NCBI RefSeq assembly: GCF_006345805.1
Contig: NC_043002.1
Coordinates: 10,044,001 to 10,108,000 of the forward strand
Source of the DNA: Octopus sinensis
Lineage: Eukaryota
Direction of reading: 5' to 3'
Length of the DNA: 64,000 bases
Part shown: positions 144 to 34,472 of the stretch, in pieces
Position numbering within the stretch: position 1 is the first letter of the stretch
How the letters are laid out: each line of letters opens with the position of its first letter
Made by a program: the position numbers and the translations under genes
Notes under the pieces: generated by a model
The model's database searches: none
Told to the model about the DNA's origin: nothing
The model's input: only the letters and a program-made list of their open reading frames with translations

Positions 144-211
144 TCAGCATCGATTGAAATCCGGATAGTAAAACTTGAGGATATTCGAGATAATATGGGC
201 TGGGAAACAAA
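144..211 (-). CDS. Gene 1 probable terminal coding exon: (V)CFPAHIISNILKFYYPDFNRC*
   Basis: Acceptor cttttctacgtttatatattttacag; phase-1 start; adds 2 Cys (12 in total after exon 1) and ends in TGA. Confidence 0.7.
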
Positions 212-399
212 CTGTAAAATATATAAACGTAGAAAAGCGTTTTTCCTTTATGTTTGTGAAGGAAAGAGAGGATTCAATGTGTAATAATAATAATAATAAT
301 AATAGTAATAATAATAATAATAATAATAATAATAATAATAATAATATAATAATAATAATAATAATAATAATAAAACTGATTGGAAGTGTTATCATGTAC

Positions 400-1375
400 A
401 TTGCTTTGTCTTCGTATAAAAGATGGGCTACAGTAAATATTCTGCTTAATACCACAAATTTGCTTGTCAGCTGTTTGACCTTAACCAGTTGAGCATGTCC
501 CTTAGTGGCTAACGATATGTGCATCACTGATCACGAGCAGAAGTAGTGGGGGAGCATCATAGCCATGTGTTGAGAGGGATTCTTTAGGGTTTGGATAATA
601 TACCTCTGGAAACATAGCTGTTTTGTTCAACATCCTTAAACAACCCTTATTCAGGGACCTTTTGAGCGGGATCGGTTACTCGACCAGAAGAAAATTCTAA
701 CTGGGCCCCACCTGCAAGGTCCTGTGCTGTTTATCTTGATATGAGATCACCATGTCACGCACATACGGTTGTGATGCATGTGCCTGGTGTACCCTTATCA
801 GACGGGTAGTCATGATGGGTATACTGGGCTTCGTATATTTTACCCCAGTGTCATTTTGATGGCATGCACTGCTCTCTCACTCAATAATAATAATAATGAT
901 AATAATAATAATAATAATAATAATACTAATACTAATAATAATAATAATAATAATAATAATAATAATAATAATAATAATAAGCAGTTGAGCAGTTCTTTTG
1001 ATGGATGACGATATGTGCATCTCTGATCACAAGCAGAAGTTGTTGGGGAACAGTATAGCCATGTGCTGAGAAGAATGTTTCAGCGTTTGGATAATACACA
1101 TCAAGAAACATGGTTGTTGCGTTCAACATGCTCAAACAACCCTTATTCAGGGACCTTTTGAGTGGGATGGGATACTCGATCTGGAGAAAATTCTAACTGG
1201 GCCCCACCTGCAAGGCCATGCGCTGTTTATCTTGATATGAGATCACCATGTCACGCACATACGGTTGAGATGCATGTGCTTGGTGTACCCTTATCAGACG
1301 GGTAGTCATGATAGGCTTCGTATATTTTACCTCAGTGTCAATGTGATGGCATGCACTGCTCTCTCACTCAACAAT
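400..1375 (+). repeat. Unclassified interspersed repeat ending in (AAT)n, two copies in tandem
   Basis: Same sequence at 26615-27180 (-) and 35495-35840 (-); always terminates ..CTCTCTCACTC-(AAT)n. Confidence 0.8.
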
Positions 1376-1925
1376 AATAATAATAATGATGATAATAATG
1401 ATGATGATAATAATGATAATGATGATAATGAAAATGATAATAATGATAATGATAATGATGATAATGATAATAATGATAATGATAATAATGATAATGATAA
1501 TGATGATAATGATAATGATAATAATGATACTGATAATGATGATAATAATAATGATGATAATTATAATGATAATAATGATAATAATGATAATGATGATGAT
1601 GATGATGATGATGATGATGATGATGATGATGATGGTGATGGTGGTGATGGTGGTGATGATGATGATGGTGATGATGATGATGGTGATGATGATGATGATG
1701 GTGATGATGGTGATGATGGTGATGATGATGATGATGGTGATGATGGTGATGATGATGATGATGGTGATGATGGTGATGATGGTGATGATGATGATGATGG
1801 TGATGATGGTGATGATGATGGTGAGGATGATGATGATGATGATGATGATGATGATATGATGATGATGATGATGATGATGATGATGATGATGATGATGATG
1901 ATGATGAAAATAGTGATGATAATAA
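1370..1925. repeat. Compound trinucleotide microsatellite (AAT/GAT/GGT); representative of many long (TAA)n, (TA)n, (CA)n, (TATG)n and (CCTA)n tracts
   Basis: Directly visible; these tracts explain most low-complexity ORFs in the track. Confidence 0.95.
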
Positions 1926-1989
1926 CGATTTCATTTATTTGTCACCCAGGTGAAAAATGACGGGGACAATACGAAGACAGACATAAAGT

Positions 1990-2400
1990 TTTGGCGTTTA
2001 CTCATAATGAAATGAAAAAAATAATAAATAAAATGTAATAAGTATACACGGAATACAATGCAAAGAAAGGTAAATATACATAGAAAACAAAAGGTTTTTA
2101 AAAGAGGTGGGGAGGGGAGGATGATAGAGATGCAGCCCTTCTGATACAGGATGACCTGTAGGGATAATCGAGAAACCCCACTGTCCAAGAATTCCCTGAG
2201 CACCAAGAGCAAGTGCCCGCTCCAATTCCTTCTCTCCGACTCACAGGTCTACACTTAGAGCAGTACCACCCACTCTTGCCTATTTTTGCAACTCTTACCC
2301 ACCGTTCAAGAAAATCACTTTCCTCTCCACTCTCAATTTCCTATTCAAGTGAAACTCGAAGAAGTCAATGAGAGCTCTACCAAAGAGGAATGTATCTGTT
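1990..2400 (-). mobile_element. Probable L1/Tx1 3' end and 3'UTR
   Basis: Degenerate ..KLRVERKV.. C-terminus followed by a pyrimidine/T-rich 3' tail; family assignment tentative. Confidence 0.4.
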
Positions 2401-31502: not shown

Positions 31503-31822
31503 GTGTGAAGGCATCTGGCTTAGTGGTTACGACATTCGGCTTACGATCGCAAGGTAGTGAGTTCAGTTCCCGGCGTTGTGTCCTTGAGCAAGACACTTTA
31601 TTTCACGTTGCCCCACTCCATTCAGCTGGCAAAAATGAGTAGTACCTGTATTTCAAAGGGCCGACCTTGTTACATTTTGTTTCAGGCTGACTCTCCCTGA
31701 GAACTACGTTAACGTTACACGTGTCTGTGGAGTACTCAGCCACTTGCACGTTAATTTCACGTGCAAGCTGTTCTGTTGATCGTATCAGCTGGGACCCTCG
31801 TCGTCGTAACCGACGGAGAGCT
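31503..31822 (+). mobile_element. tRNA-head SINE family C/D (representative copy)
   Basis: tRNA-like head, GTCCTTGAGCAAGACAC block and shared tails. Related copies near 20780-20965, 33125-33475, 38270-38612, 54143-54590 and 61557-61900. Confidence 0.75.
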
Positions 31823-33638
31823 CTTTTTTATATATGTGTGTGTGTCGGGAAAATACTAATTCAGCCTGCCAAATTCCCAAGGATCTCACGTGAGACCCGA
31901 GTCCAATCAAGATTCACTTCCGTTGTCCAATCAAGATTCACTTCCGTCGCCTATGAACGACTTCAACACTAAATCAATTATATATTGAGATCCTGAGTAC
32001 TACACGTATCTGTGGAGTACTCAGGCAGTGAGCTGGCAGAAACGTTAGCACGCCGGACGAAATGCGTTGCCGTATTTCGTCTGCCGTTACGTTCTGAGTT
32101 CAAATTCCGCCGAGGTCGACTTTGCCTTTCATTCTTCCGGGGTCGATAAATTAAGTACCAGTTACGCACTGGGGTCAATGTAATCGACTTAATCCGTTTG
32201 TCTGTCCCTGTTTGTCTCCTCTGTGTTTAACCCCTTGTGGGTAGTAAAGAAATATATATATTGAGATCCTTCTAAATTTTTGTTTTCCCTTTTCTTCAGC
32301 CAATAGCAGACTGTCTACGTCTGCCATCATGACACTCAGAGACTTAGCTTTTACACGCACACACACACTGGCAAATTGCTTTGACGAGCTTCTTAGACTT
32401 AAATTTCTCCTCTCATACGACTTAATAAATAACAGACATTAAAAAGCTTAAACATACGTTTCTCTATTGAAATTGACTCCAACTTTTCGCAGCTGGGAAA
32501 CTTCGTAACGGCTCAATAAATTTGTCAATGTGTCATTTCTTTGCGCAGTCTTTTATCTAAACTTCAATATTTCCACCATGCCATAATATATCGGTGACAT
32601 TCTTAACCGTTGCACATATACTTATATATACAAACACACACGCATACCTATCTACCCACCAACCTACCTGCCTACCTACCTACCTACCTACCTACCTACC
32701 TACCTACCTACCTACCTACCTACCTACTTATCTACCTACATACATACATATATACATACATACATACATACATACATACATACATACATACATATGTGTG
32801 CGTGCACGGGCGCGAGTGTGTGTGAGTAGGTGTGTGTTTGTAATAAAACGAAGCACAGACGGACAGCACAGGTAAATATGAAACTGGAAAAAATACACAA
32901 TGGACATAGACATGTCCATATATATTGATAAAATATATCAGTTATCGATAAAATGTTACCTCAATGTTGACAACTGACGATAAATATTGTAAAATTTAGT
33001 GGACTTAAATTGGACTTAAATGAAAGAACAAGAATGATGCAAAAAACAACAACAACAAAAAACAATTAAGAGAACAGGAAGAATAATAAAACAAGAAAGA
33101 CAAGTAAGTAAAAAGAAATAAACAGGTGAATAGAACAGAGATCCGATCAACGGAACAGCCTGCTCGGGAAATTAACGTGCAAATGGCAGAGCACTCCACA
33201 GGCACGTGTACCCTTAACGTAGTTCTCGGGGAGATTCAGCGTGAAACAGTGCGTGACAAGGCTGGCCCTTTGAAATACAGGTACAACGGAAACAGGAAGA
33301 AAGAGTGAGAGAAAGTTGTGGTGAAAGAGTGCAGTAGGGTTCAACCCCCCTCTCCTCGCGGGGCCTCGTGGAGCTTTAGGTATTTTCGCTTAACAATGCC
33401 CGGTTTGGGAATCGAAACCACGATCCTTCGACCGCGAGTTCACTACCCTAACCACTGAGCCATTGCGCTTCCACGAAACAGATTTATAAGCGGCGAAAAA
33501 CAGTTGGTAGAAAGTAAGTGATATACCGAGAGCAGTATATCTACCCATTATGCATTTTATCGAAAATTTAAAAACAAAACACTTTTAGGCTTTGGTTAAT
33601 GAAAGTTTAGAAGTTGGTTGTTGCATTTTTTGATAATA

Positions 33639-34034
33639 TCTTTATATATAAAAGTGAGGTTGTGTGTCTGTCTCCTACGATTTAGATTCCTAACTACTCC
33701 CACATTTTGCGGTGCAGTTTAACCAAAACCGGGTATCTTATAGTCGTGATTCATATCGAGCCATTCTGGGTATTAGCGCGCGTCTACGATGAGTCTACGA
33801 TTTAAAAACAAATTTAACATAATTTTTTTCCATTTTAATGCATTTTTTCGCTATTATATAAGGGAAGTAACTCTCTAAAAATGTCTACGATGAGTCAACG
33901 ATTTAAAAAAAATTTACTATAATTTTTTTCCATTTTTAATGCATTTTTTTGCAATTTTTTGGCTATAACTCGCTAAAAATGCTTATATAGTTATTTCCCT
34001 TACAAACCCGAGCAACGCCGGGCGATACTGCTAG
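33639..34034 (+). mobile_element. Non-autonomous Helitron
   Basis: A|TC start, CCCGAGCAACGCCGGG hairpin, CTAG|T end, internal ~90-bp duplication. Confidence 0.75.
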
Positions 34035-34340
34035 TTTTATATATATTTACAATTCAAGACGACCGGCCATTTTTCATAATCTTTAATCTTCACTGAACTA
34101 TTTTATCATCTCAGAATTCTTTATACCAGCCATTTTCAATAATACAATTTGTTCACGTTTTGTTTGAGTCGCCATATTAAATTAAAAGTAAACGAATTAG
34201 AGAAATATTAAGAAGCATTATACATATGCTTTCAACTATTTGTGAGAATCAGAATGTTGGGTAAATTATTCTGTCTAAGTAGTTGGTAAATATATATCCT
34301 GTCACCCATTCTATCTCACTCAGTTTCGTTATCTTTTCAG

Positions 34341-34472
34341 ATTGCAATGACCTCAGAGGAAATTGCATGTCCCATGGCAAAGGATGGATTGGAGTCTACC
34401 GTAAACGTTGTGTTAAAAAATATTGTTATGTAGCGAGAGGTCGTACACAACTAGGTATAATTATTGATAAGG
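34341..34472 (+). CDS. Gene 2 coding exon 3: (Y)CNDLRGNCMSHGKGWIGVYRKRCVKKYCYVARGRTQLGIIIDK
   Basis: Acceptor tttcgttatcttttcag; donor GTATGT at 34473 gives 132 nt, identical to gene 1 exon 3. An alternative in-phase donor GTATAA lies at 34455. Confidence 0.88.

Follow-up and report, generated by a model that had tools for sequence, protein, structure and literature searches.

An uncharacterised, clustered family of putatively secreted twelve-cysteine proteins in Octopus sinensis

Introduction

Contig C6 of the Octopus sinensis genome (2.72 Gb in 13,516 contigs) contains, at C6:10044001-10108000, a stretch of 64,000 nucleotides, hereafter the window, in which genes with signal-peptide exons and identically spaced cysteine codons lie among repeats. 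A sequence-only reading of this DNA had described a divergent pair of paralogous genes encoding an unrecognised secreted cysteine-rich protein family, had suggested a fixed disulfide scaffold with variable loops, and had named fold prediction, dN/dS ratios and a count of family members as checks. The locus thus raises the question of what kind of family these genes represent and what the pattern of change among its members may say about its role. We consider it probable that they belong to an undescribed, fast-diversifying multigene family of extracellular binding proteins, so far found in Octopus only; within this interpretation, secretion and disulfide pairing are inferred, as are the role in binding and the attribution of the divergence to selection.

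Results

Three genes in the window share one exon structure and one cysteine pattern

The window consists of AT-rich, repeat-laden DNA and holds three family members, genes A, B and C (Table 1), all of which have complete open reading frames (ORFs) with canonical splice sites. In genes A and B, the models of which were rebuilt from the raw sequence, every junction is canonical AG/GT and every intron is in phase 1. As had been read before, these two genes face away from each other across repeats, with their ATGs 11.1 kb apart. The described succession of an acceptor directly before the ATG, a signal-peptide exon, a 123-nt exon and a 132-nt exon, all in phase 1, was recovered in both genes, but in both the coding sequence continues into a fourth, 68-nt exon in phase 1 that had been overlooked. 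The interval assigned to the pair, 144-34472, starts at the stop codon of gene A but omits the last exon of gene B. The fourth exon contributes two cysteines, the final one being the C-terminal residue, and extends the pattern by C-x16-C-x19-C(end) to 12 cysteines in the mature protein. The earlier spacing from C-x2-C to the last x4-C is therefore present in both genes, but as part of a set of 12 rather than 10 cysteines. In genes A, B and C alike the spacing is x2, x5, x1, x12, x4, x11, x6, x14, x4, x16 and x19, and the exons measure 123, 132 and 68 nt. Genes A and B encode 136 and 124 aa, respectively, their mature parts are 38% identical, and both contain the RGNC..HG..W(L/I)GVY motif noted previously.

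The ATG of gene A lies directly 3' of the acceptor ...ttaattacag and that of gene B directly 3' of ...cttctttcag. Since both start codons directly follow a polypyrimidine-AG acceptor, at least one upstream non-coding exon is implied for each gene. No 5' non-coding exon of gene A was located in the window; the spacer between the two ATG exons should contain this exon or exons as well as any promoter used by gene B. Exon 1 of gene A encodes the signal peptide MHTYALALLLFLPLLVNC and 12 N-terminal mature residues, and P0009 (LOC128248170), its orthologue in O. bimaculoides, has the identical acceptor-ATG arrangement and donor.

The signal peptides are plausible in both genes, in agreement with the earlier description: judged by eye with the (-3,-1) rule, each has a hydrophobic core of 12-13 residues and, after it, small residues in positions -3 and -1. 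The putative cleavage site lies between V-S-G and D in gene B, between V-N-C and Y in gene A and between V-N-S and N in the orthologue of gene A. The additional Cys18 of gene A thus occupies position -1 of the likely signal-peptidase site, where the orthologue has serine. The C-terminus ...PPLKQC lacks a hydrophobic tail and hence a GPI signal. Conserved dibasic processing sites are absent from the family; for this reason, and because the whole mature chain appears to be one disulfide-locked unit, we rejected a neuropeptide or prohormone reading.

About 20 loci on a single contig

When the whole genome was searched in six frames with three members of the family, about 19 loci were detected in four clusters, every one on contig C6, in addition to the divergent member LOC118763783 (about 19-20 in total). 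The two genes of the sequence-only reading are thus paralogues, as stated there, but they have a third paralogue in the window and belong to a far larger set. One weak match on a contig other than C6 is probably spurious. The reading frame was open in 16/16 exon-2 and 17/17 exon-3 copies, and in each of them the first cysteine codon is preceded, at a distance of exactly 2 nt, by an AG. An in-phase donor was found as GTAAGT at +121 in 14 of the 16 exon-2 copies and as GT at +130 in 13 of the 17 exon-3 copies, and the donors of the remaining copies are displaced by whole codons. This conservation of frame, acceptor position and donor phase is far beyond chance.

Adjacent cysteines occur nowhere in the family. 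Net charge varies from -6 to +12 (gene B +12, gene C +2, gene A +4), so that the members are not all cationic as those of a classical antimicrobial peptide family would be. A divergent branch, formed by P0016 (O. bimaculoides LOC128248060) and P0020 (O. sinensis LOC118763783, on C6), has jointly lost Cys4 and Cys12. Because exactly these two cysteines are missing together, this single lineage suggests a Cys4-Cys12 disulfide that would tie the tail back to module 1, the part encoded by the 123-nt exon. The O. sinensis model of P0020 has a long unrelated C-terminal extension, and the branch contains a ...YGEIW... stretch reminiscent of VWC domains.

Relatives are restricted to Octopus among annotated proteins

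Gene B alone had no homologue in a word index of 5.8 billion proteins. Homologue searches with an alignment of the 19 paralogues returned seven proteins, and those with an alignment of database members returned eight; their source species are O. bimaculoides, O. sinensis and O. vulgaris, each protein bears the name 'uncharacterized' or 'hypothetical', and a precomputed Pfam domain is attached to none. A HMMER profile run against 1.84 billion cluster representatives retrieved 14 family members and one further match, the 897-aa repeat protein P0017 (E 1.6e-4), which we discarded, its match being spurious and confined to a short motif. The profile that includes genes A, B and C retrieves the annotated members, among them LOC118763828, LOC128248170 and LOC128248081, at E 1e-18 to 1e-55; NCBI lists all of them as 'uncharacterized protein'.

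In a maximum-likelihood tree, gene A pairs with P0009 and genes B and C together pair with P0008 (LOC128248081, O. bimaculoides), and most members form one-to-one orthologue pairs. In the NCBI model of P0009 the exons measure 109, 123, 132 and 68 nt, and its acceptor-ATG arrangement and junction sequences agree with those of gene A. Two duplications, B/C and g2/g3, are specific to O. sinensis.

Searches against known families were negative throughout. At E<=10, neither the two window proteins nor the 24 family rows gave a relevant Pfam match (including fn1, VWC, SVWC, UPAR_LY6, pacifastin and PSP94), and the family profile gave 0 matches to all PDB chain sequences. The pacifastin module has six cysteines in the order C-x9-12-C-x2-C-x-C-x6-8-C-x4-C; besides the missing match to PF05375 at E<=10, the spacing of the octopus family differs from it. 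The earlier statement that the pattern is neither pacifastin nor classic VWC thus holds at the level of Pfam. The literature searched contained no mention of any of 12 locus or accession identifiers of the family, reports on octopus cysteine-rich, secreted, orphan or salivary-gland proteins gave nothing on it, and a published proteome of octopus skin mucus does not include the O. sinensis loci in its supplementary lists. Rfam recognised no RNA family in the window. The family had been called unrecognised, which is right inasmuch as it has no Pfam or PDB sequence relative, but NCBI models of relatives already exist. It is uncharacterised rather than unseen, lacking a name, a Pfam model, a literature record and a recognisable sequence relative outside Octopus.

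Mature exons of young duplicates differ more than their introns

In young duplicates the mature exons differ three to four times more than the introns, while the cysteines and the signal exon are fixed. Between genes B and C, the signal exon shows 0/52 differences and the mature exons show 30/323 (9.3%), compared to 347/13770 (2.5%) in non-coding DNA (Fisher p=3e-9). The corresponding dN of 0.117 and dS of 0.040 (dN/dS 2.9) do not by themselves differ significantly (p=0.16; about three synonymous changes), and the case therefore rests on the comparison with non-coding DNA. Concordantly, g2 and g3 differ at 29/255 exon positions versus 124/2858 in the flanks (p=1e-5), with dN 0.137, dS 0.076 and dN/dS 1.8. 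For gene A and its O. bimaculoides orthologue we obtained dN 0.207, dS 0.372 and dN/dS 0.56; the exons are 80% identical and the aligned surrounding stretches, mostly intron, 82-88%. Cysteines and splice sites are all unchanged throughout the compared copies. Together with the excess of change in the mature exons, this strengthens the earlier suggestion of a fixed scaffold with variable loops, and the dN/dS values supply the comparison of paralogues and orthologues that had been proposed.

When the changes between B and C were polarised with P0008, ten amino-acid changes fell to gene B and two to gene C, and 13 were ambiguous. Six of the derived changes in gene B add positive charge (about +6), and in the maximum-likelihood tree the branch of gene B is about 9 times longer than that of gene C. 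Ectopic conversion from gene A or g1-g3 is an unlikely source of the exon differences between B and C, no donor being available at most of the differing sites.

An inverted duplication placed gene B opposite gene A

Gene C is the parent or a sister copy of gene B. The two genes lie in the arms of a palindrome. Each arm is about 20 kb long, the aligned blocks of the two are 93-98% identical, and a spacer filled with LINE fragments lies between them. The signal-peptide exon of gene B and 100 nt on either side are 100% identical to gene C. The 84 kb spanning the palindrome contain no N gaps, and the palindrome is therefore not a scaffold join. It is absent from the syntenic region of O. bimaculoides, where a single B/C-type gene is present and the orthologue of gene A lies 11.4 kb downstream of it on the same strand. 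From this tandem order it follows that the head-to-head layout of A and B is a by-product of an inverted duplication in the O. sinensis lineage.

The O. bimaculoides model LOC128248081 begins with two small 5' exons (L073 10001-10036 and ~17160-17206), which align upstream of gene C and give an N-terminal extension of 27 residues in front of the signal peptide. P0004, P0013 and P0019 have comparable extensions. That such exons belong to the 5' UTR and contain an upstream ATG by chance is more likely than that they are truly coding. The model does show splicing of an upstream exon to the acceptor that immediately precedes the ATG of the signal peptide.

The arrangement invites the alternative that gene B does not work, either as a decaying, promoter-less inverted copy or because the B/C palindrome is an assembly artefact of two haplotypes. 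Exclusion of the two 5' exons from its arm, the single B/C-type gene at this position in O. bimaculoides, the accumulation of most derived changes on gene B and the lack of an annotated protein equal to it would all fit this explanation. Gene B nevertheless has an intact ORF in which none of the 12 cysteines is lost, its eight splice sites are all preserved, and its mature exons differ from those of gene C 3.7 times as much as non-coding DNA does, where neutral decay predicts equal rates. The identity to gene C in and around the signal exon argues in the same direction. As for an artefact, a scaffolding join is at odds with the ungapped sequence, and arms that differ by 2.5% plus indels, with different transposon content, would be high for alleles. 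We therefore regard a dead or artefactual gene B as rather unlikely; genes A and C and the family stand even if gene B is dead.

The predicted fold is a pair of small beta modules

The orthologues P0009 (for gene A) and P0008 (for genes B and C) were folded with AlphaFold2 from the 24-row family alignment. The full-length model of P0009 reached a mean pLDDT of 79.6, with residues 40-120 above 90; the model of the mature part of P0008 reached 83.1 and has the same strand layout. In both models the module from the 123-nt exon forms a short hairpin and a three-stranded sheet (E-E / E-E-E) and the module from the 132-nt exon a three-stranded sheet (E-E-E). Against the PDB, the ten best Foldseek matches of both models were all tandem fibronectin type I (FnI) pairs (8-9FnI, 2-3FnI, 1-2FnI), at E 3e-3 to about 0.3, with probabilities of 0.85-1.0, mostly above 0.9, and target-normalised TM scores mostly of 0.4-0.6 over about 88 columns. 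Structure prediction, one of the checks named beforehand, thus yielded a confident all-beta core and a weak resemblance to FnI pairs, with no confident match to a known family.

As in the FnI pairs of fibronectin (8-9FnI, PDB 3EJH and 3GXE; 2-3FnI, 3CAL, 2CG6 and 2CKU), two consecutive predicted modules of about 42 residues are stacked end to end. The FnI module architecture, 40-45 residues with a two-stranded followed by a three-stranded antiparallel sheet, is recovered in the predicted octopus models, the match being modest (E>=3e-3, TM about 0.5). Vertebrate FnI modules are encoded one per symmetrical phase-1/1 exon, as in the octopus family. FnI pairs bind their partners by beta-strand addition, which is a plausible mode for the octopus family too. 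In contrast, there is no sequence similarity, searches with PF00039 (fn1) and with PDB profiles being negative. FnI modules have four cysteines, C-x(about 25)-C-x-C-x(6-9)-C, bonded 1-3 and 2-4 (PROSITE); octopus module 1 has six cysteines instead and module 2 reads C-x6-C-x14-C-x4-C. A further exon, for a C-terminal helix and two cysteines, also sets the family apart from FnI pairs, and the octopus proteins are stand-alone 12-kDa mollusc proteins, unlike FnI, a chordate domain inside large mosaic proteins. We therefore describe the predicted fold as FnI-like, a pair of small beta 'finger' modules with one module per symmetrical exon, but do not file the family under FnI.

An alternative origin of such modules would be a highly derived offshoot of VWC or of SVWC (Vago-like) domains, acting as a secreted cytokine or growth-factor-binding module. 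SVWC proteins (arthropod Vago) and VWC proteins are, like the octopus family, small, secreted, cysteine-rich, exon-module-encoded invertebrate proteins. The N-terminal subdomain of VWC is FnI-like, VWC modules are commonly phase-1/1 exons, and VWC and SVWC are widespread in invertebrates, FnI being essentially chordate; the Foldseek matches to FnI and, in P0016, the resemblance of the ...C..YGEIW... stretch to the VWC motif G-x2-Y-x2-GE-x-W are in keeping with such a derivation. Yet neither VWC nor SVWC (PF00093, PF15430) matched in Pfam at E<=10, no VWC chain of the PDB matched the family profile at E<=10 or appeared in the Foldseek top 50, and the C-x2-C-x-C and C-C-x2-C signatures are missing. 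The cysteine number differs (8-10 compared to 12), as does the spacing. This derivation appears distinctly unlikely.

Still less probable is that the proteins are divergent Ly6/uPAR three-finger members acting like toxins, the salamander pheromone PMF or SLURPs. This possibility was raised by the UniRef name of P0011 (A0A0L8H3R2, O. bimaculoides LOC106872966), 'UPAR/Ly6 domain-containing protein', and by shared general features: like snake three-finger toxins and plethodontid PMF, the octopus proteins are all-beta, disulfide-rich (10-12 Cys), secreted, about 100 aa long and begin with C-x2-C, and they combine a fixed cysteine frame with hypervariable surfaces. Hypervariable three-finger families with conserved signal peptides exist. 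None of the 24 family rows matched UPAR_LY6 (PF00021) in Pfam at E<=10, however, and no three-finger, CD59, uPAR or toxin chain was among the top 50 Foldseek PDB matches of either model. Three-finger proteins are built on a four-disulfide core and often carry a GPI signal; in the octopus family the C-terminal CC-x4-5-C-N signature is absent, as is a hydrophobic C-terminal GPI signal. The name of P0011 looks like an over-reaching automatic annotation, unsupported by the Pfam, motif or fold searches.

Finally, the idea that the exons are chance open frames, suggested by the dominance of microsatellites, SINE-like repeats and LINE fragments in the window, can practically be dismissed, being already refuted by the conservation data: about 20 loci have frame, cysteine spacing, intron positions and phases in common, one-to-one O. 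bimaculoides orthologues have identical exon structure, relatives have NCBI models, and the AlphaFold2 core is confident.

Discussion

A proposed remodelled surface on a stable extracellular scaffold

The family is new but of a familiar general kind, that of taxon-restricted, tandemly arrayed, secreted cysteine-framework proteins; what is unusual in it is that two modules of predicted FnI-like fold are combined with a disulfide framework that is new. Conopeptide superfamilies, mussel myticins and defensin-like peptides likewise combine a conserved signal exon with a hyperdivergent mature region, invariant cysteines and tandem duplication, and in such families, too, introns part the signal region from the mature region. 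They have no sequence relation to the octopus proteins, which are much larger (about 106 aa, six disulfides, two modules) and have neither a propeptide nor a dibasic cleavage site. Among cephalopods, the beta-microseminoprotein (beta-MSP)-like contact pheromone of Loligo is a squid egg-capsule protein that triggers male aggression. It is a small, secreted, beta-rich protein with 10 cysteines and is similarly fast-evolving with its cysteines conserved, showing that proteins of this sort can be chemical signals in cephalopods. It differs by its C-x2-C-x-C and CC pattern and as a single gene compared to a 20-gene family, and the octopus family has no PSP94 Pfam match.

On the favoured interpretation, each gene has one or more upstream non-coding exons, seen only in O. 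bimaculoides models and suggested here by the acceptor at the ATG, followed by four coding exons, the first for the signal peptide, the second and third (123 and 132 nt, phase 1/1) for one small disulfide-braced module each and the fourth (68 nt) for the final pair of cysteines and a predicted short helix. The encoded protein would be secreted and soluble, with a mass of 12-14 kDa and 12 cysteines, its two modules predicted to be stacked into a rigid rod resembling an FnI pair and its tail presumably bonded to module 1 via Cys4-Cys12. The family has expanded by local duplication on one chromosome, after which the mature exons outpace the introns in change while cysteines, splice sites and signal peptide stay constant. 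Such a stable extracellular scaffold may bind an ever-changing partner through variable sheet surfaces and loops, possibly, by analogy with FnI-type modules, with a strand of the partner added to an exposed sheet edge.

Several points weigh against this interpretation. The signal peptides were called by eye with the (-3,-1) rule, and genes A, B and C appear to be unannotated in O. sinensis, their exact proteins being absent from the protein collection. In an exact-sequence look-up P0002 matched nowhere, P0009 and P0008 matched only in the O. bimaculoides genome, and no transcript contigs were found. The arm of gene B begins 532 bp upstream of its ATG; because both ancestral 5' exons lie outside it, gene B may be poorly expressed or silent. 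Besides the non-significant dN/dS contrast between B and C, arm-to-arm gene conversion could have lowered their non-coding divergence. All Foldseek matches have E-values of 1e-3 or more, and the cysteines are not arranged as in FnI. The FnI resemblance may be an analogy between simple beta modules; moreover, the last exon was modelled as a short helix with low confidence (pLDDT 53-67). The restriction to Octopus applies to annotated proteomes, unannotated squid, cuttlefish and nautilus genomes lying outside the search.

A remodelled surface on a stable scaffold fits proteins with a changing partner, such as those of venom or saliva, immune effectors, and gamete or pheromone proteins. As partners of the proposed binding proteins, microbes or prey (defence, saliva, venom) would be our first choice and the other sex or conspecifics (gamete and pheromone proteins) our second: we give roughly half of the weight to defence or predation, about a third to reproduction or chemical signalling and the rest to endogenous signalling. 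Going further, it is possible, if tentative, that the family constitutes a recognition system born in octopuses or octopods, in which a stand-alone FnI-like scaffold with six disulfides, independent of chordate FnI, gave rise to about 20 hypervariable binders serving as venom, saliva or antimicrobial effectors or as species- or sex-specific contact-chemosensory signals. If so, octopuses would possess a repertoire of differently charged (-6 to +12) secreted binders. Cephalopod genomes are rich in lineage-restricted genes of obscure role, among which this family is structurally well defined. It is a candidate source of new bioactive octopus proteins in saliva or venom, in mucus or haemolymph defence and in gamete or pheromone signalling, and a case study in the birth and diversification of a new disulfide-rich domain family. 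Gene B, without the ancestral 5' exons yet the fastest-changing and strongly cationic, offers a natural experiment on neofunctionalisation versus gene death.

Features of the window, repeats and mobile elements

Table 1. Features of the window and of the family loci on contig C6. Positions are those of the window unless prefixed with C6.
Feature	Position	Strand	Remarks
Gene A exon 1 (ATG, signal peptide)	13720..13807	-	88 nt; donor gtaagat, phase 1
Gene A exon 2	9033..9155	-	123 nt, phase 1/1; six Cys, C-x2-C-x5-C-x-C-x12-C-x4-C; predicted beta module 1
Gene A exon 3	4321..4452	-	132 nt, phase 1/1; four Cys, C-x6-C-x14-C-x4-C; RGNC..HG..WLGVY; predicted beta module 2
Gene A exon 4	144..211	-	68 nt including TGA at 146..144; encodes VCFPAHIISNILKFYYPDFNRC; same exon in the O. 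bimaculoides orthologue
Gene A likely polyadenylation signal ATTAAA	101..106	-	38 nt past the stop codon; aligns with AATAAA of genes B and C; judged from sequence
Spacer between ATG exons of genes A and B	13808..24914	.	11.1 kb, repeat-rich
Gene B exon 1 (ATG, signal peptide)	24915..24966	+	52 nt; encodes signal peptide MFIYSILLITALCVSG; donor gtaagtt, phase 1
Gene B exon 2	30358..30480	+	123 nt, phase 1/1; six Cys
Gene B exon 3	34341..34472	+	132 nt, phase 1/1; four Cys; RGNC..HG..WIGVY
Gene B exon 4	39762..39829	+	68 nt including TAA; encodes VCTKQHFVADVLRFYYPPLKQC
Gene B likely polyadenylation signal AATAAA	39873..39878	+	judged from sequence
Gene C last coding exon	60315..60382	-	remaining exons past the window end
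Gene C other exons	C6:10111291-10111422, 10115298-10115420, 10121085-10121136		past the window end
Alignments of 5' exons upstream of gene C	C6:10127632-10128000 and C6:10125022-10125490		4-6.6 kb upstream of the gene C ATG
Inverted duplication arm 1	24383..44209	+	carries the four coding exons of gene B, without ancestral 5' non-coding exons
Spacer between arms	44210-56298		about 12 kb filled with LINE fragments
Inverted duplication arm 2	56299..64000	-	carries gene C; extends about 13.6 kb past the window end to C6:10121641 (77641-56299 in extended coordinates)
Family cluster	C6 9.93-10.12 Mb		loci g0, g1, g2, g3, A, B, C
Family cluster	C6 13.14 Mb		1 locus
Family cluster	C6 19.06-19.26 Mb		6 loci
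Family cluster	C6 96.78-96.91 Mb		5 loci
200-250-bp repeat copies	~2420-2900, 4550-5200, 8090-8330, 11880-12550, 25280-25790, 27740-27870, 31980-32300, 38900-39140		probable SINE
Trinucleotide microsatellites (ATT/AAT/ATC type)	280-480, 860-990, 1350-1930, 24090-24500, 27170-27280, 27460-28500, 35830-36000		long, up to about 1 kb

LINE-type fragments were found at 41215-44816 (+) and, as its mirror, at 58612-56352 (-), and further at 55287-55823 (-), 34502-34828 (-) and 14701-15540 (+). They contain AP-endonuclease (Exo_endo_phos_2, E 2e-11) and reverse-transcriptase (RVT_1, E 4e-18 and 8e-11) domains. Since some of the copies lie inside both palindrome arms, these are older than the duplication. 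The ORF at 41920-42306 (...NVIYGITCPSCKENYIGETG...) has no Pfam match and contains what we take to be a resemblance to the GIY-YIG motif of Penelope-like elements.

At 9687-10116 and 17793-18108, on both strands, short frames resemble by eye the C-terminal part of mariner/Tc1-type transposases (...SPDLNLCDFFLWGYLKSKVY..., ...HPPYSPDIAPSDFHLFRSL...). A 200-250-bp interspersed repeat, probably a SINE, is present in many copies on both strands and has the translated signature ...ETLARRAKC(L/V)AVFRL.LRSEFKFRRGRLCLSSFRGR.... Tracts derived from (TA/TG/CA)n occur throughout the window, and together with the trinucleotide microsatellites they account for the 11 kb of repeats described between genes A and B.

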